Sequence record: AJ748296.1
DNA length: 33,641 nucleotides
Reading direction: 5' to 3' (one strand)
The notes under the pieces were generated by a model. The model saw only the letters and a program-made list of their open reading frames with translations, made no database searches and was not told where the DNA came from. Shown here piece by piece: positions 2,118-33,641 of this stretch; the first letter of the stretch is position 1; each line of letters starts with the position of its first letter. Made by a program: the position numbers and the translations under genes.

Positions 2118-2426
2118 ATGGAATTTGAAGATTTAGATGTAGTTCTATATGTATTTTTTGAAAATCCAGAAATGAAAAGTTTTGAATTTGAATTTAAACA
2201 ATTATTTGAAACTACTGAGAGCGGTTTAAGATATCTGATAGGAGTTCCAGATTCAAGAAATAAAATCAAAAATAATAATGAAATTATTGAAGAATTTATA
2301 TATTATCAAAATGATGATATTGTTACTAAGTTGATATTTTATTATACTAAAGGCACGAATAGAATTTATATAAGAAAAATTTACGGCTGGAAAGAGAAAA
2401 GATTAGAGTCTGAAGATGAAGAATAA
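2118..2426 (+). CDS. AcrID1-family paralogue, 102 aa
   Basis: MEFEDLD..L..FFENPEMKSFEFEF start and EFIYY..KLIFYY....IYI..I..W end match the AcrID1-like pattern at 31642; acidic. Confidence 0.65.
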   Translation: MEFEDLDVVLYVFFENPEMKSFEFEFKQLFETTESGLRYLIGVPDSRNKIKNNNEIIEEFIYYQNDDIVTKLIFYYTKGTNRIYIRKIYGWKEKRLESEDEE

Positions 2427-6320: not shown

Positions 6321-6447
6321 ATCCTTTTTTTCTTTTTCTTTTTTATCTCTCATATTATGTATTGGAAATTCTATATTTCTCTTCATATTACGAAATTAAA
6401 AAGATATAAAAATGTCATAATTAAAAGATATTTTTAGGGGAAGAAAC

Positions 6448-16445: not shown

Positions 16446-16605
16446 ATTATACCTGGCGTTAGATGATTTGACTATGGCTTTAGCTACAGAAGATAAAGAA
16501 GAAGTTAGAAAAAGTGAAGTATTTCAGAAAGCATTAGAAGTTGTGAAAGTAGTTAAAGAAATGAGAAGATTACAAGTTAAACCGGCAGAAGGTGAGGAAA
16601 AATGA
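16381..16605 (+). CDS. Small helical protein (69-74 aa)
   Basis: Overlaps the hjc 3' end; TGTCATA box at 16370; ATGA coupling to the acrIII-1 start. Confidence 0.7.
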
Positions 16606-16946
16606 ATAAAGTCTATCTTGCAAATGCATTTTCAATAAATATGTTAACTAAATTTCCTACAAAAGTAGTAATTGATAAAATTGATAGATTAGAATTTTGT
16701 GAAAATATTGATAATGAAGATATAATTAATTCAATTGGACATGATTCAACAATTCAATTAATAAATTCACTATGCGGAACTACATTTCAAAAGAATAGAG
16801 TAGAAATTAAATTAGAGAAAGAAGATAAATTGTATGTTGTACAAATTTCACAGAGATTAGAAGAAGGAAAAATATTAACTCTTGAAGAGATATTGAAACT
16901 GTATGAAAGTGGAAAAGTTCAATTTTTTGAGATAATTGTAGACTAA
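16602..16946 (+). CDS. acrIII-1: AcrIII-1 viral ring nuclease (DUF1874, ORF114)
   Basis: [18 protein letters not shown] (catalytic His) and QRLEEGKIL motifs. Confidence 0.95.
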
Positions 16947-26583: not shown

Positions 26584-26856
26584 TTACCGAGACCTCCAAA
26601 AATCAATTTCGATAATACAGACTTTGTTATCTTTCCAAAAATAATTAATTATTGAATGAATATTGTTTCTATATTCATAAAAATCAACTGTTCTATTTTT
26701 TTCAGCATATCTATACGTTAAATCACCATCTTTAATAATTTCTTCAAATTGATTATACGAAACTATTATTTCTTTATTTAACATTAAATTCATTCTTACT
26801 ATCGTCTGATCCTGGAAAAATTTCTCAACAATTGATTTTAATTCTTCAAACTCCAT
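26584..26856 (-). CDS. AcrID1-family paralogue (90 aa from MEFEEL)
   Basis: MEFEELKSIVEKFF....EII..Q FEE....DFYEY...INYF.KD.KV.IIEIDFWR; GGTGG RBS. Confidence 0.7.
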   Translation of the reverse strand: MEFEELKSIVEKFFQDQTIVRMNLMLNKEIIVSYNQFEEIIKDGDLTYRYAEKNRTVDFYEYRNNIHSIINYFWKDNKVCIIEIDFWRSR

Positions 26857-26868
26857 TTTTACCACCTC

Positions 26869-27156
26869 TTATCTTTTCTCACGAAATAGATCAATTTCTA
26901 GAATATGTATAAAACCTTTTTCTTTAAAATAATAAATAATAAGTTTAACAAGTGTATTTGATAATTCATAATATACAAACTCATCTGATAATACCCAAGG
27001 ATCTTTATCTACAAAAGATAGATTTGGTCTTCCTACTAATTCGTTATACTCATTTTCTGAAACTATTAAAGGTCTCTTAAAGGCTAAAGTTAACTCATTA
27101 AGATTTTTTTCTTTAAAAAACATGTCTATAATTCGTTTAACTTTTTTCAAATTCAT
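26869..27156 (-). CDS. AcrID1-family paralogue (95 aa from MNLKK)
   Basis: KRIIDMFFKEKNLNELTL.F.RPL.VSE.EY.EL....DEFVYYE..KLIIYYFKE....ILEIDLFR. Confidence 0.7.
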   Translation of the reverse strand: MNLKKVKRIIDMFFKEKNLNELTLAFKRPLIVSENEYNELVGRPNLSFVDKDPWVLSDEFVYYELSNTLVKLIIYYFKEKGFIHILEIDLFREKR

Positions 27157-27305
27157 TTCCTGTTTCACCTATCTCTAAAAATCAAAAATTCTATGACATT
27201 TTTATATCTTTATTTTTTGGAATAAGTAGGATTAATATTTGGAATTTGAGAAAAATTATCGATAGAATTAGGTAATGTTAAAAAATAAAAAAAATAAAAA
27301 AAAGA

Positions 27306-27608
27306 TTAACTTTCTAAAAGTAATCTAACATAATCTACAATATCTTCTTTTATGCACAAAAATTTCTTGTCTCTTTTAACTCTTTTTATCTTTATGAAAA
27401 AGATATTTTTATCAACTAATCGTTTTATTCTAAGATATCCGAAATATTGGTATCGATTTGCATCCTTTTGAAAAAGAAATAGTTTACCTTCACTAGTGTA
27501 CATAGGAATGCATAAATCATTATCGCTATCTTTCTGTGCAAGAGAAAAAAATCTAATCAGAAGTTCTTTTTGCTTAGGATACAATTTAATTTGGACTTCT
27601 TGACTCAT
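27306..27608 (-). CDS. 100-aa protein (SIRV ORF112 family), possible winged helix
   Basis: Start MSQEV after a GGTGA RBS; early-type promoter at 27641-27660; LYPKQKELL and [13 protein letters not shown] suggest a wHTH (weak). Confidence 0.7.
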
Positions 27609-27640
27609 TTCTTTCACCTTAATATCATATATGTATAAAC

Positions 27641-27660
27641 TCATATATAAAGCTTTCTCT
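27641..27660 (-). promoter_or_regulatory. Early-type BRE+TATA promoter AGAGAAAGCTTTATATATGA
   Basis: Same motif at 29552-29572, 31425-31444, 31964-31984 and 32331-32352. Confidence 0.7.
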
Positions 27661-27678
27661 ATCTTTTTATCTCTTTAA

Positions 27679-27718
27679 TTTTTCAACCTTCTGAATTAAT
27701 ATCATAAACTTGAGAAAA
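27679..27718 (-). repeat. Conserved intergenic element, copy 2
   Basis: tttttcaa ccttctgaattaatatcataaac ttgagaaaa; 23-bp spacer. Confidence 0.8.
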
Positions 27719-27812
27719 ATTATTGATAAAATTAGATAATTTATGGAAAATTTAAAATTAGAAGAATTAGAATTAGTATTGAAAAAATAAAAAAAATTAT
27801 TAATAAAAAAAA

Positions 27813-28538
27813 TTAATCTTTTGGATTCTTTTTCGGTACGGGATGTGAAAACAATAACCATTTACCGCCAAATTCTGTAAATCCAACATTATCATGTTCT
27901 GGCGAAATAATTTTTACAACTGGTGGTTCTGGTAAATATACTAAAGCTCCTTCTCCCGGCATTATATGTAATTGTTTATATTTTAATACATTAATATCAA
28001 ATTCAATAATATGATTATAAATACCAATTATTCTAGTTTTTTCAAAAAGTTCTTCATTAATTTTTTCTATCTTTAACGGCGGTACTTCATATACACTTAA
28101 ATGTCCTTGTTTACCATCAGGATAAAATGCCGGCGAAAATTCTAATTTTTCTCCTTTATAATAAATATCAAATAATTGAATTGAATAATTATCATACTTT
28201 ATTATTATTGATGAACTCTTTAATGAAACTTTAGATAAATCTAAATTTATTAACATTGATTTAATATCATTAATTTTTCTGAATATTTTCTGTTTGAAAG
28301 TAATATTGAATATCGGCGGATTAGGTGTATAGTATATTCCGTTAGTTTCCTTAGCTTTATCAACTTTTATTTTATTTTCTAGAATTGATACTTCAAAACA
28401 GCCTTGAAATGTTAATCTACTTCTTGAAATGTACTTTTCACAATTTATAAATTTATCTGTTACAGAAATTTTATTTCCATCAGGAAGTAAAAAAACATTT
28501 GGAAGATAATCTAATTTTTTTCTTTCTTTTATCTCCAT
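27813..28538 (-). CDS. AcrIIIB1-family anti-CRISPR paralogue (ORF241)
   Basis: Shares RKKL..LP.VFL, SRS.LT..GC, GIYY.P.P, QGHL, PG.G.L.Y.PE and WLLFSH motifs with ORF252; position just downstream of pvap as for SIRV2 gp48. Confidence 0.75.
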   Translation of the reverse strand: MEIKERKKLDYLPNVFLLPDGNKISVTDKFINCEKYISRSRLTFQGCFEVSILENKIKVDKAKETNGIYYTPNPPIFNITFKQKIFRKINDIKSMLINLDLSKVSLKSSSIIIKYDNYSIQLFDIYYKGEKLEFSPAFYPDGKQGHLSVYEVPPLKIEKINEELFEKTRIIGIYNHIIEFDINVLKYKQLHIMPGEGALVYLPEPPVVKIISPEHDNVGFTEFGGKWLLFSHPVPKKNPKD

Positions 28539-28772
28539 TTATTTCACCAATTTATCATTCTGTATATGACATTTATAAATTTTTATTTAAGTTTTTACGT
28601 TTATATCTCATTATTTTTGTATTTTTTTATACTTATAATTTCTGTAGAAATACAATTAATATAACAAAAATGAGAAAAATTATTGATAAAATTAACTATT
28701 TAGAAGAAAATTTAAAATTAGAAGAATTAGAATTAATATCTAAAAAATGAAAAAAATAGTTGATAAAAAAAA

Positions 28773-29531
28773 TCAATCTTGACCTGATCTCCTGGGTCTT
28801 GTATGGCTGAACAATAACCAAGTGTCTCTATTAACGTTAACTTCAACTTCTTTATGGTCAGAACTTTCAAGTTTAACGTGAACATCTTCTGGAACATAAA
28901 GTAATGTCCCACTACCTGGAGTAACGTAAAGGTTCTTAAACATCAATATAGACTTATCAAAGGTAACTTTATGGTTAAAGATCATAAATTCGCTAACTTC
29001 CGTAAACAATTCTTTATTAATCTCTCTTTTTTGACCATCATTATCATAGTAAAGTAAATAAACATCTTTCGGCTCTGGAACACTATAAATCCTAAGATGA
29101 CCCTGTTCTGCAAGTAACGGAAATTCATAAATCAATCCTTTGAAATAAATATCAAATACTTCAATTGAATAATTGCTATATTTTACCAATAACCATGGTT
29201 GCCTTGGCGAAATTTTCGATACGTCTAAGCTCATTAAAAATTGTTTCAAGTCATCAAGATTCCTAATCGCTTTCTGTCGAAAAGTAATATTGATTATTGA
29301 AGGATGCGGAACATAATAAATTCCTTTGACCTCTTTCAGAGTATCAATTTTTAACATTGATCCGACTGTATAGCCTGTCACACAACCTTCTTGGGTTAGT
29401 CCAGATCGGGATACGTAATGAACACAGTTTATATAATTCTTGTCTAATGTAAACTTATTTAAATAGATGTCCAAAAAAACTTTGGGTAAATTGTTTAACT
29501 TTTTCCTTACACTTACCTCCACTTTATTCAC
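28773..29531 (-). CDS. acrIIIB1: AcrIIIB1-family anti-CRISPR (ORF252)
   Basis: About 250 aa, directly downstream of pvap as SIRV2 gp48; C-terminal WLLFSHTRPRRSGQD; early-type promoter at 29552-29572; GTG start. Confidence 0.75.
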   Translation of the reverse strand: MNKVEVSVRKKLNNLPKVFLDIYLNKFTLDKNYINCVHYVSRSGLTQEGCVTGYTVGSMLKIDTLKEVKGIYYVPHPSIINITFRQKAIRNLDDLKQFLMSLDVSKISPRQPWLLVKYSNYSIEVFDIYFKGLIYEFPLLAEQGHLRIYSVPEPKDVYLLYYDNDGQKREINKELFTEVSEFMIFNHKVTFDKSILMFKNLYVTPGSGTLLYVPEDVHVKLESSDHKEVEVNVNRDTWLLFSHTRPRRSGQD

Positions 29532-29669
29532 CGATATATAATATGCTAATTCTCATATATAAAGTTTTCTCTATGTTTTTACATTTCTATTTTTCATCTT
29601 CAAAACTTGAAAAAAATAAAGAATCAGAATATAAAAAAGATTAAAAAAATAATACCTTAAAAATTAGAA

Positions 29670-29966
29670 TTACTTAGCTTGAGAACTTGGATTTTGATCT
29701 TTTGCTTTTTCTCTAGCTAATGAATTTACATCTCTTAATGTATCCATATTGAGAAGTGCATTTATTCCAGTTACTGTAGTATCTTTAATACTTTCAATAG
29801 CAGTAACTGTAGATTTTGTCATTTGATCAACAGCTTTAGCAAAATTCTCATTAGATTGCTTTTCATTATAAAGATGTACTATTTCTCCAACTACAAAACT
29901 ACCAATTAGTATACCAGTAACTGCAAAAAATCCATATAGTGCACCTTCTAATAATGTTATTGCCAT
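29670..29966 (-). CDS. pvap: PVAP (P98) virus-associated pyramid egress protein
   Basis: 98 aa; N-terminal TM ALYGFFAVTGILIGSFVVG followed by EIVHLYNEKQ...AIESIKDTTVTGINALLN. Confidence 0.95.
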   Translation of the reverse strand: MAITLLEGALYGFFAVTGILIGSFVVGEIVHLYNEKQSNENFAKAVDQMTKSTVTAIESIKDTTVTGINALLNMDTLRDVNSLAREKAKDQNPSSQAK

Positions 29967-30045
29967 TTTTGGTCAAATAATATTATCAAGAACTAAATAA
30001 TATAGTTTTCTGTAAATTTAAAGAAATAAAGAATTTTTTAATTCT

Positions 30046-30300
30046 TTAAGATTTTTTAGTACGCAATATTTGAATTTCATATAATAAAGCTTTTTCATTA
30101 TCTGTTAACTCTTTAGTATTAATTTTTATTTCAATATTATCATTTGAAGAATAAATAAATTGACTAAATGCTAATTCAATTAATTGTTGATATTCTTCTT
30201 CATTAATTTCAAAAGACATCTTAAATTTTAAACTTAATTCTTGTATATTAGAATCTTCAAAAAACAAATCTATAATTTTTTTAACTTCTTTAAAACTTAT
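30046..30300 (-). pseudogene. Shortened AcrID1-family paralogue with ATA where the ATG is expected (pseudogene or non-canonical start)
   Basis: GGGGA-aagaaaa-ATA-AGT-TTT-AAA-GAA; the frame has no ATG before residue ~27 of the family-aligned region; the track TTG start at 30336 lies in the TGTCATA box. Confidence 0.55.
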
Positions 30301-30357
30301 TTTTCTTTCCCCAATATTTTCATAAAAATATGACAATTTTAAATTTTTATCACTCTA

Positions 30358-30398
30358 TTTTTTCAACCTCCAGAATTAATATCACAAACTTGAAAAAA
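30358..30398 (-). repeat. Conserved intergenic element, copy 3
   Basis: ttttttcaa cctccagaattaatatcacaaac ttgaaaaaa; perfect 9-bp inverted ends. Confidence 0.88.
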
Positions 30399-30484
30399 AT
30401 TATTAATAGAATTAACTAATATTTAAAAAATAAAAAATAGAACAAAATAAGAATTAAATAAAAGAAAAAGAAAAAAAGAAAGAA

Positions 30485-30793
30485 TTACTTTTGAATTGGT
30501 TTATTTATGAATGGATTTAATTTTTGATTAAAGACTTCATCTGCATGTGAAAGTGCTAAAATATTAGCATTATTATCATAAATTATGTATAATTGATAGA
30601 AATAATGACAAACTTCTTCGGCATCTCTGTAAAGTTCTTGTAAAGAATTCCAGACTATACCATATGCCGTAATTAGACCATATTTTGGAAGTTTATTATA
30701 GCAGTGTGATACTAAAATTTCATCATTATATGTGACTAAAATTTCTAGACTTTCTTTATTTACATTTATTCCAGGTATCATTATCTTTCTCAT
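30485..30793 (-). CDS. Hypothetical 102-aa accessory protein
   Basis: GTGATAG RBS-like sequence; TGTCATA box at 30820-30826 (minus strand). Confidence 0.75.
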   Translation of the reverse strand: MRKIMIPGINVNKESLEILVTYNDEILVSHCYNKLPKYGLITAYGIVWNSLQELYRDAEEVCHYFYQLYIIYDNNANILALSHADEVFNQKLNPFINKPIQK

Positions 30794-30987
30794 TCTCTAT
30801 CACTAAATTTCTCTAAATATATGACATTTTTATATTTTCATTTAACAAAATCGATAAGAAGTAGAATTAATATCTGAAAAATGATAAAAATTAAGCATAG
30901 TTATAGGTATATACAAAAAATAAAAAAGATAAAAGAGAAAATAAAATTAGAGAAGAAAAAAATGAGAAATTAACTTAAGAAAAAAAA

Positions 30988-31392
30988 TTAATATAACTCT
31001 AACTTAACCCAGCCCTTACTCACACTAAAAACATATAATTTTGCATGAGATATCAATTCTCCCTCATAATCGTTACCACTTTTATGTAATATCACAACTA
31101 CTCTACTTTTTGGTATAATTACATAATCAACTTGGTCAGTACTGGGATAGTTATAAATTTTATCGATTACTATCTTTTCCACTTTTCCATATAGTATTTG
31201 CATTTTTCCATAGTCACTGAAACTGCTACCTGGTCTACTCCATTCGCTAATTCGCAGTAGAAATTTAGCCTCTGGACTACCTTCTTGTAACGTCTTTTGA
31301 ATCAATTGCTTTAACTCGCTTTCATTTAACTCTTCTTCACTTAAATTAATTTCTTGATCTGAATTTTGACTTGAATTTTCTTCTTGACTCAT
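30988..31392 (-). CDS. Hypothetical 134-aa accessory protein with acidic low-complexity N-terminus
   Basis: GGTGGA RBS; early-type promoter at 31425-31444. Confidence 0.8.
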   Translation of the reverse strand: MSQEENSSQNSDQEINLSEEELNESELKQLIQKTLQEGSPEAKFLLRISEWSRPGSSFSDYGKMQILYGKVEKIVIDKIYNYPSTDQVDYVIIPKSRVVVILHKSGNDYEGELISHAKLYVFSVSKGWVKLELY

Positions 31393-31641
31393 ACTTTATC
31401 CACCATATTTACATATGTAAAAAGCAATATATAAAGCTTTCTTCATTTTTTTACATCTCCATTTACATAATAAATTGCATTTTTGATATACATAATATGA
31501 TAAATAAGCTTTATCTCTTAATATTTTTAATCTCCTGGAATATTATAACAATAGTGATAAAAATTAAAGATAGAATTGGATAATTAGAAAAAAAATAAAA
31601 AAAGGAAATTGAAATGAAATTAGAAAATTAAAAAAAGAAAT

Positions 31642-31932
31642 TTACTTTTTCTCTTCTCTCCAGAAATGTAATTCTAACACGAATATTTTATCATCATATC
31701 TATAATAATCAATCTCTAACTCTAAATATTGGTTCTCGAATTCCCACCATTCGTAAAAGTCACTATAAATTTTATTATTAATAACTTGCTGTAATAGTAT
31801 AGCATTTTGTATTAATTCTTTAAACTCTTGCTCATCTAGTTCAACTTCTGGTGAGAAAATTAGATCTACTTCCCATAATTCGGAATTTTCGAATATGGGA
31901 CTTAACATATCTTTTAACGTTTTATACTTCAT
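31642..31932 (-). CDS. acrID1: AcrID1 anti-CRISPR (type I-D Cas10d inhibitor) close homologue, 96 aa from MKYKT
   Basis: MKYKTLKDMLSPIFENSELWEVDLIFSPEVE...FYEWWEFENQYLELEIDYY..DDKIFVLELHFWR matches AcrID1 as recalled (IFENSE, EWWEFENQYLE, KIFVLEMHFWR); early-type promoter at 31964-31984. Confidence 0.9.
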   Translation of the reverse strand: MKYKTLKDMLSPIFENSELWEVDLIFSPEVELDEQEFKELIQNAILLQQVINNKIYSDFYEWWEFENQYLELEIDYYRYDDKIFVLELHFWREEKK

Positions 31933-32001
31933 TTTTCTATCACTTCTTTTATATCTGATCTTTCTCATATATAAATCTTTCTTCATCTTTTCATGTCTCT
32001 A

Positions 32002-32042
32002 TTTTTTCAATCTCCAGAATTAATATCACAAACTTGAAAAAA
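32002..32042 (-). repeat. Conserved intergenic element, copy 4
   Basis: ttttttcaa tctccagaattaatatcacaaac ttgaaaaaa. Confidence 0.88.
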
Positions 32043-32132
32043 ATTAAGCATAGCCTTAGCTAATTTAAGGAAAATTAAAACTAGGAAAAAGAAGAATTAG
32101 AACTTACAAATAAAAAAATAAGGCTAACTTTT

Positions 32133-32300
32133 CTAACAGCTCTCTAAGTACTGTTTGACTTTTCTCACGCTAACGCCTAAGAAACCAGCAATCTGTTGAA
32201 CTGAGTAGTTCTTTCGAGCTAACTCATGGACAACACTAACAACATCATCCTCGCTTTCTATGAAATATCTTACGTTACCGACTTGAACCATCTTTTTCAT
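32133..32300 (-). CDS. 55-aa HTH protein, paralogue of 1306..1473
   Basis: MKKMVQVGNVRYFIESEDDVVSVVHELARKNYSVQQIAGFLGVSVRKVKQYLESC; 38/55 identical to the left copy by manual alignment; the track start at 32336 lies in the promoter. Confidence 0.9.
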   Translation of the reverse strand: MKKMVQVGNVRYFIESEDDVVSVVHELARKNYSVQQIAGFLGVSVRKVKQYLESC

Positions 32301-32458
32301 CTTTCTTTCACTAATATCATATATGTAAAAACTCATATATAAAGTTTTCTCTCAACTTTTACGCTTTCATTTTTCGACTTTCAATTTTTGAATAAATAAG
32401 AGGCCTCCAATTTTTATCATTACTGCATATACAAATTGAAGGTTCCAATTTTTCTATC

Positions 32459-33641
32459 TCCAATTTTTTAAAAAAGGCCACTTTTTTTTACAAAAGTGAA
32501 AAAAACAATTTTTTCCACTCCAAATATTTTAAAGAGGCCACTTTTTATTCCTAGGCTGAAACAAATCAAACAGATTTTTAACAGCTTACAATTATTATTT
32601 CATTTCTCAACCTAAAATTGTAACTTCCAATTGGAGCGGTAAAAAAGTCTAAAACAATCTATTTTGAGTCTGAAAATAATTATATAATTAATAATTACTA
32701 TCTAGCTAGTTAGCTAATATATATAATATGATAATTAGCTAATTAGCATAATATAGAAATATATAAATAACAAAATATTACGACTGTAATAATATTAATA
32801 AAATAAAAAAAATAATAAAAAAAAGAAGGATAGTCCTCACTACTATAATTAAATGTCTTCTGGTAGTATTTAAACTTTTCTTTCTAAACTTCCAATTTCC
32901 TCCATTGCAAACGCAAAAAACTGTAGTGAAATTTCTGAATATGTTTAGTAATTTAATAATTTTCCGCCGTAAAAGTTTTGGTTTGCATTAATTATATATT
33001 TGCAAATTAGAAACTTGGAAATTATATAATATATTATAATATATGAATATGTTTAGTATATTTATAATTTTTTGACGGAAAAGTTTTGGTTCCTCCTAAT
33101 TATTAATTAATAATTTAATAGTTCCTAATTTATATATATCTGGAAATGTATAATTATTTGGAATTTAGGAATTTACAATTAAGCAATTTTATATTATAAA
33201 TTTCAACAAATGATAGAATATTTGGAATTTTGTAATTTCCAATTTACATAACTAATTGGAATAATTTTCCAAGATGTACAATTAATTGGAATTTTGGAAT
33301 TTACAATTTTATTAACTTTTTGTAATAAATTTCCAAGATGTAGAATTTATTGGAATTTAGGAACTTAGGAATTTCCAATTTTATTAATTTGTTGGAATAA
33401 TTTTACAAGGTGTAGAATTAATTGGAATTTAGGAACTTCCAATTTATTAACTTTATTTCGAAAATTACGCAAAATGACAGAATAATTGGAATTTAGGAAT
33501 TTAGGAATTTTCAATTTATTAACTTTGGTGCGAAAAAAACGAAAAAAACGAAAAAAATTGGAATTTCCAATTTATCTCATTAGTTGCGAAATTTACGCAA
33601 AAAATGAAAAAAACTCCTATTACCTTCTTACTGCTCTACAA
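32459..33641. repeat. Right inverted terminal repeat (ITR)
   Basis: Reverse complement of 1..1183; ends ...ctgctctacaa vs start ttgtagagcag... Confidence 0.97.

Follow-up and report, generated by a model that had tools for sequence, protein, structure and literature searches.

The stretch of DNA examined here (the window, 33,641 bp) is the complete genome of the rudivirus SIRV1 variant XX, hereafter XX: it is 100% identical to AJ748296, a record that gives S. islandicus LAL14/1 as the host of this virus, and its G+C content is ~25% throughout. Within it lie five open reading frames (ORFs) related to the anti-CRISPR protein AcrID1, all of them annotated in AJ748296 and all at the places named by an earlier analysis (hereafter the original prediction), which took them for strongly diverged members of the AcrID1 family, one close to AcrID1 itself and four remote. 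ORF102a (2118-2426) is annotated on the plus strand, and ORF94 (26584-26865), ORF95 (26869-27168), ORF96 (30046-30336) and ORF114b (31642-31986) on the minus strand. We find that these five genes belong to one family, that each falls in an orthogroup of its own with counterparts in sister viruses, and that two classes of promoter stand before them. As a whole, the evidence makes it likely that ORF114b, the AcrID1 orthologue of this genome, is its I-D inhibitor and that the four other copies act on other targets.

The expansion of this family has been noticed before. Among 35 identified AcrID1 homologues, 26 were found clustered in SIRV1, SIRV1 variant XX, SIRV2 and SIRV3 (PMC11065993, Bhoobalan-Chitty et al. 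2024), and duplication with functional diversification of these homologues was proposed in the same study. In RefSeq, 'AcrID1 family anti-CRISPR protein' is the name borne by several orthologues from SIRV1, SIRV2 and SIRV3, and the names given in protein collections are similar. Both the observation and the inference of diversification are thus already in the literature, and for this very genome; what we add are the orthogroups, the promoter classes, the pattern of selection, the ATA at the start position of ORF96 and a cassette specific to XX.

Five diverged copies of one ancient family

All five ORFs score above the Pfam gathering score of PF07118 (DUF1374), which is 21 bits: ORF95 (127.7 bits, E = 2.5e-37), ORF102a (127.5 bits, E = 2.9e-37) and ORF94 (115.4 bits, E = 1.7e-33) match the profile over its full length, and ORF114b (48.8 bits, E = 1e-12) and ORF96 (38.1 bits) follow at lower scores. 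Each of the five also matches phrog_4902 over its full length, with E-values of 6e-22 to 5e-33 that lie far beyond chance. These families include the structurally solved proteins SIFV0014 (2H36) and AFV1 ORF99 (3DJW, 3DF6), and ORF102a, ORF94 and ORF95 probably adopt an AcrID1-like fold, judging by their full-length profile matches. A hidden Markov model (HMM) of the family, built from the five XX copies and iterated over all six-frame ORFs of at least 35 amino acids in XX, SIRV1, SIRV2 and SIRV3, recovered exactly these five in XX, four members in SIRV1, and nine each in SIRV2 and SIRV3. Six further ORFs near the genome ends (ORF76, ORF105, ORF112, ORF98, ORF102b and ORF134b) were considered as hidden members and rejected, having neither a Pfam match to the family nor an hhalign signal.

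The copies have diverged to a pairwise identity of 21-31%. Alignments of them display the two features that the original prediction had described as common to all, an N-terminal M..k.l..i...FF pattern and a C-terminal ..kI.ilEI.fwR pattern, and they agree with it in confining the YEWWEFENQY block to a single XX copy, ORF114b, the block being found elsewhere only in the AcrID1 orthologues of that protein. ORF102a, ORF94, ORF95 and ORF96 do not contain this block (YEWWEF(E/N)NQYL in its general form) and fall in orthogroups other than that of AcrID1 proper. The division into one close AcrID1 and four remote paralogues is upheld by the Pfam and PHROG matches and by the structural model of ORF96 discussed below. 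Membership of DUF1374 says nothing about the target of any one protein, because most members of the family have no assigned function.

Orthologues of the XX copies were found at matching genome positions in SIRV1, SIRV2 and SIRV3. ORF102a corresponds to SIRV1 gp03 (100% identity), SIRV2 gp10 (85%) and SIRV3 gp07 (86%); ORF94 to SIRV1 gp37 (100%), SIRV2 gp45 (76%) and SIRV3 gp36 (68%); ORF95 to SIRV1 gp38 (100%), SIRV2 gp46 (86%) and SIRV3 gp37 (86%); and ORF96 to SIRV1 gp43 (92%), SIRV2 gp50 (88%) and SIRV3 gp42 (89%). ORF114b has counterparts in SIRV2 (gp03, 69%) and SIRV3 (gp02, 58%) and none in SIRV1. A maximum-likelihood tree supports the five orthogroups at 99-100% (99/98 for the orthogroup of AcrID1 and ORF114b), with the deeper branching unresolved. 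The duplications are therefore older than the split of SIRV1, SIRV2 and SIRV3. Pairwise ratios of nonsynonymous to synonymous substitution rates (dN/dS) are 0.08-0.18 for ORF95, 0.19-0.28 for ORF102a and 0.32-0.43 for ORF94, and lie within 0.08-0.43 when the AcrID1 group is taken together with these three, values indicative of purifying selection on all four.

An AcrID1 orthologue in a variant-specific cassette

ORF114b is shorter than annotated. Its first 18 annotated codons are translated promoter: an early anti-defence regulatory sequence with the core GAAGAAAGATTTATATATGAG occupies 31933-32010 on the minus strand, and the true start is the ATG at 31932 (M19 of the annotated protein), giving a protein of 96 amino acids encoded at 31642-31932 (minus strand). 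The original prediction had chosen the same start, which comparison of the upstream sequences confirms, and PMC11065993, where ORF114b is listed as AcrID1, amends the start in the same way. The protein matches PDB 6EXP, the structure of SIRV3 AcrID1 (also 6THH), over residues 19-113 of the annotated form (E = 3e-32), and SIFV0014 (2H36) and AFV1 ORF99 more weakly. It aligns end to end with the two AcrID1 proteins that have been tested, SIRV3 gp02 (6EXP/6THH) and SIRV2 gp03, at 58-69% identity, sharing with them the signature block, its length, the early promoter and a location near a genome end; it differs from them in that about one-third of its residues are unlike those of each, and in that it sits on the right arm, within a cassette that SIRV1 does not have.

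ORF114b is the true AcrID1 orthologue, and its homology to these proteins points to Cas10d as the protein that it would bind. AcrID1, as known for SIRV3 gp02, acts as a homodimer that blocks I-D interference; a pair of Cas10d molecules is joined by two such dimers in an inactive 2:4 ring (PMC7689449). In the same way a dimer of ORF114b would bind Cas10d, the large subunit of the type I-D system of the host, and hold it in an inactive complex, its gene being transcribed at once after infection from a promoter of the early anti-defence kind associated with Aca8.

A separate observation concerns the published comparison of these contacts. According to PMC7689449, 'closely homologous AcrID proteins' show hardly any conservation of the contacts with Cas10d. 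In Supplementary Fig. 8 of that paper, however, the entry named 'AcrID_SIRV1' is letter for letter ORF114a (16602-16946, plus strand), a DUF1874 protein of the AcrIII-1 family and no relative of AcrID1; the remark on low conservation may therefore rest on unrelated proteins.

The genomic setting of ORF114b distinguishes XX from SIRV1. By blastn, XX is nearly collinear with SIRV1 at 91-99.5% identity except at ~30438-31974, where comparison with SIRV1, SIRV2 and SIRV3 delimits an XX-specific right-arm cassette of ~1.5 kb that holds ORF102b, ORF134b and the acrID1 orthologue; in its place, the terminal repeat of SIRV1 extends through a second copy of ORF90 (gp44). The terminal repeat of XX itself (1-1629 and 31975-33641) is 1,629 bp long with 91% identity. 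Neither ORF102b nor ORF134b has a counterpart in the SIRV1, SIRV2 or SIRV3 genomes; ORF134b is phrog_10536, named ADG.05 in PMC11065993, and ORF102b is an orphan, matching nothing in Pfam or PHROG. LAL14/1 carries a single I-D locus, some spacers of which are directed at SIRV2. Because LAL14/1 is the host given in the XX record and this strain has I-D immunity, the acrID1-bearing cassette that separates XX from SIRV1 is a plausible and simple candidate reason why XX grows on a host with a I-D system.

Two promoter classes and the targets of the remote copies

The sequences upstream of the family members divide into two classes, an early anti-defence core on the one hand and a TATA box joined to a GTC-type box on the other. 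The early core, GAGAAAGMTTTAWATA, precedes ORF114b, ORF90, ORF55 and ORF67 (both Aca8), ORF134b, the AcrIIIB1 homologue ORF252 and the AcrIA3 homologue ORF112. It agrees with the consensus GAAATAGAAAGKTTTATATA and the gene list of PMC11065993, in which the predicted anti-defence genes of XX include ORF114b and ORF90 and leave out the four remote copies. Upstream of ORF102a, ORF95 and ORF96, by contrast, the early core was not found, and a TATA box is followed directly by (A/T)TGTCATA. This arrangement, in the general form TATA + (A/T)TGTCAT(A/G), recurs upstream of ~20 genes and is kept in SIRV1, SIRV2 and SIRV3. Examples lie at 2082, 2447, 2711, 6412, 8840, 12592, 13132, 15584 and 16369 on the plus strand and at 30827, 30336, 28572, 27199, 10677, 5601 and 3978 on the minus strand; those at 6412, 8840, 12592, 15584, 16369, 10677 and 5601 are among the boxes that stand before core genes. 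A passage of PMC5569661, citing Kessler et al. 2004, describes the GTC element as a SIRV-specific promoter feature. The split into two classes also holds among the SIRV2 and SIRV3 orthologues, and 5 of 12 SIRV2 AcrID1 homologues are reported to be without the early promoter (PMC11065993).

ORF102a (2118-2426, plus strand) has its TATA and GTC boxes from 2082. ORF95 (26869-27156, minus strand), with TATA and GTC boxes at 27199, is the first gene of a two-gene operon, and ORF94 (26584-26856, minus strand) is the second, beginning 12 nt past the ORF95 stop with a GAGGTG ribosome-binding site of its own and no promoter of its own; co-transcription has been described for the corresponding pair in SIRV2, gp46-gp45. 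ORF94 most likely starts at the ATG at 26856 and ORF95 at the one at 27156; a GGTG-type ribosome-binding site stands before each, and RefSeq places the starts of the SIRV1 orthologues at the corresponding codons. A complex prediction for ORF95 with ORF94 returned a score of 0.00, obtained without controls, and this is evidence neither for nor against binding.

Two observations on neighbouring promoters may be recorded here. The annotated ATG of ORF112 (27306-27644, minus strand; a homologue of AcrIA3 / ADG.09) falls within the TATA box of its early promoter (GCTTTATATATGAG), and its likely start is at 27608, as amended in PMC11065993. In addition, stretches of ~145 bp upstream of ORF112 (27656-27797), ORF96 (30340-30481) and ORF90 (1478-1626) are 77-79% identical to one another; this shared regulatory sequence (TTTTTTCAAGTTTGTGATATTAATTCTGGAGGTTGAAAAA) stands upstream of promoters of both classes.

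What the remote copies do can be approached through published genetics of SIRV2, whose gp10, gp45, gp46 and gp50 are direct orthologues of ORF102a, ORF94, ORF95 and ORF96 (76-88% identity) and resemble them in gene order, in their GTC-type promoters and in the gp46-gp45 operon, with no notable difference. The deletion virus SIRV2M is without gp02-09 and gp51-53 and keeps all four of these genes, and yet it is called acrID1-null, and acrID1 is the marker by which it is selected when the host has I-D; in that setting, therefore, the counterparts of the four remote XX genes give no protection against I-D. When gp10-14 and gp48 are missing as well, the virus is susceptible to I-A although it retains gp45, gp46 and gp50, and the pair gp46-gp45 (acrID1 homologues) carried on a plasmid had no I-A-dependent effect, complete I-A inhibition being attributed by the authors to gp47 and gp48 together. 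SIRV2M-VI, from which every family member is missing, shows wild-type infectivity in a host without CRISPR arrays. It is also said, from work by Bhoobalan-Chitty et al. in 2019, that deletion of gp48 alone renders SIRV2 sensitive to III-B. Taken as a whole, the SIRV2 genetics argue against redundancy on Cas10d and disfavour the I-A and III-B systems of LAL14/1 as targets.

These results bear first on the proposal that every one of the five copies inhibits I-D Cas10d, redundantly or additively, the expansion serving dosage or robustness. The common family and fold, and the RefSeq label 'AcrID1 family anti-CRISPR protein' on the orthologues, speak for it; yet SIRV2M keeps all four remote orthologues and is still acrID1-null in an I-D host, the copies are just 21-31% identical and the remote ones lack a block that is kept in all AcrID1 orthologues, and the four remote copies belong to another promoter class. 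Redundancy on Cas10d, which the original prediction had named among the outcomes contrary to it, is argued against by the SIRV2 orthologues, and we regard it as highly improbable for XX.

A second proposal gives the four remote copies an anti-CRISPR role directed at other CRISPR-Cas types, or at Cas variants found in other Sulfolobus or Saccharolobus hosts. It can draw on the anti-CRISPR activity proven in the family, on the location of these genes close to the genome ends, in the company of anti-defence genes (ORF94 and ORF95 adjoin AcrIA3 and AcrIIIB1 homologues), on the purifying selection seen in three of the four, and on the functional diversification proposed in the literature (PMC11065993). 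Set against these points, I-A inhibition in LAL14/1 is explained by gp47 and gp48, the gp46-gp45 pair has no I-A-dependent effect, and the early promoter that is thought necessary for anti-CRISPR action (PMC11065993) is missing, so that we consider this proposal unlikely. The original prediction had offered a wider choice for the paralogues: other Cas10d variants and other CRISPR types, which this second proposal takes up, and also non-CRISPR defences or the formation of heterodimers. Where it concerns other CRISPR types of this host, the suggestion is disfavoured by the gp46-gp45 result, by the sufficiency of gp47 and gp48, and by the wild-type behaviour of SIRV2M-VI without CRISPR arrays.

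The explanation that we prefer divides the five old paralogues, duplicated before SIRV1, SIRV2 and SIRV3 diverged, into two classes, functional as well as regulatory. ORF114b would form the first, its 1.5-kb right-arm cassette without counterpart in SIRV1 being consistent with the presence of I-D in the host LAL14/1. ORF102a, ORF95-ORF94 and ORF96 would form the second, retaining the small alpha/beta fold without the signature block under the general rudiviral TATA and GTC promoter. If they behave as their SIRV2 orthologues do, they would not block I-D, would be unneeded against I-A in LAL14/1 and unneeded for replication, and their targets would most likely be different ones, for instance a non-CRISPR defence, other host proteins or the Cas variants of other hosts; ORF96 would probably be weakly expressed or decaying. 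A stricter version, in which the four GTC-promoter copies constitute a separate class that is not anti-CRISPR at all, acting on non-CRISPR defences or host processes and expressed with the replication genes, seems to us possible but rather doubtful.

Several points weigh against the two-class explanation. ORF241d, an AcrIIIB1 homologue and listed anti-defence gene, also has a GTC-type box, so that the two promoter classes may not map cleanly onto early versus late, and the timing class of the GTC-type genes is suggested by their promoter sequences. The functions proposed for the XX proteins are read from orthologues only, and orthologues that are 68-89% identical could differ in target; ORF114b, for its part, shares just 58-69% identity with the two AcrID1 proteins that have been tested. 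The published negatives (not AcrID, unneeded for I-A inhibition, dispensable without CRISPR arrays) were obtained with SIRV2 proteins and not with those of XX, and they speak to sufficiency and necessity in one host, in which an auxiliary or additive role against I-D would be possible.

The question that the family poses becomes sharper for these comparisons. Four orthogroups with the AcrID1 fold have been kept across related viruses, three of them under purifying selection, and their promoter class is another than that of the family's proven anti-CRISPR. All tests of a role against CRISPR have so far gone against them, and identifying what they bind could bring to light new factors of archaeal hosts or their defences.

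ORF96 and ORF90 at the margins of the family

The most divergent paralogue is ORF96, which in the family frame reads from an ATA codon at 30300 (30046-30300, minus strand). Its match to PF07118 (E = 2.2e-9) covers the N-terminal profile positions 2-55 of 92, and its match to phrog_4902 (E = 6.5e-22) is full-length; about 12 residues are absent after helix 2, an internal deletion, and the C-terminal hairpin is altered. An AlphaFold2 (AF2) model, made from a family alignment of 23 rows and no templates, has a predicted local distance difference test (pLDDT) score of 81 and the order helix-strand-helix-strand-strand. Foldseek returned 6EXP (template modelling score, TM, 0.79), 2H36 and 3DF6/3DJW as its best PDB matches, with unrelated folds appearing only at E >0.06, and the model superposes on these DUF1374 structures. 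The original prediction had named the lack of a shared AcrID1 fold among the outcomes that would refute it, and the model shows this fold in the most divergent copy.

Other features of ORF96 set it apart from the genes under purifying selection. At the position of the family's initiator methionine, its orthogroup has ATA in XX, SIRV1, SIRV2 and SIRV3 alike, and the annotated TTG start at 30336 falls inside the TTGTCATA box of the TATA and GTC promoter (30301-30360, minus strand); in SIRV2, the TTG that matches this annotated start is followed by an in-frame TAG. Pairwise dN/dS is ~1 (0.3-5), with dS just 0.01-0.13, counts of substitutions too small for a significant test. At 30194-30313 the four viruses share 97-100% of their DNA letters, as against 80-98% in the adjoining vap gene. 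The conserved ATA, the dN/dS near 1, the near-invariant DNA and the internal deletion suggest that the gene is weakly expressed, is decaying or is constrained in its DNA: ORF96 may be weakly translated or a relic, and the conserved AUA 'start' and near-invariant DNA of its lineage could point to translation from a non-AUG codon or to a role of the nucleic acid itself.

This raises a further alternative, that some copies are non-functional, ORF96 above all being a relic kept by linkage or by DNA-level constraint, and that the working family numbers fewer than five. The ATA in place of a start codon in all four viruses, the annotated TTG within a promoter box, the dN/dS ~1 with very low dS, the partial Pfam match with its internal deletion, and a DNA identity above that of the neighbouring vap gene all point in this direction. 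Nevertheless, four viruses keep the frame open over its full length, confidence in the AF2 model is good (pLDDT 81), the substitutions are too few for a significant dN/dS test, and initiation at AUA is possible. We hold a relic to be a serious possibility, though somewhat short of an even one.

The count of five may also err in the other direction. ORF90 (CAG38822; 1698-1970, plus strand), which has an early promoter, is filed under the cluster 'AcrID1' in Supplementary Data 1 of PMC11065993, and because of this assignment five may be an undercount of the family in XX. Were ORF90 to belong, it would be a sixth and very remote member. The sole sequence link between ORF90 and the family is transitive, through SIRV3 gp43, which in a set of 1,139 sequences matches ORF90 (E = 5e-7) and SIRV2 gp52 (E = 1.5e-9) over its own full length, also matches the family members SIRV2 gp02 and gp05, and scores 4e-11 against the family HMM with its N-terminal 60 residues. 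ORF90 itself has no Pfam match, the hhalign probability of a relation to the family is 0.2-2% whether ORF90 or its group is compared, and a word search found no relatives except identical copies. A single-sequence AF2 model of ORF90 of moderate confidence (pLDDT 70) gave no match to AcrID1 by Foldseek or by VIA-align, the hits of the latter being to unrelated folds (best Z 5.6).

A last observation concerns the recorded distribution of DUF1374. Proteins near-identical to rudiviral members of the family (P0022, P0026, P0007 and P0016 in our collection) are filed under Colwellia asteriadis, Planomonospora alba (on a contig of 31,951 bp) and 'MULTISPECIES [Bacteria]'. These entries probably represent rudivirus DNA contaminating bacterial assemblies.

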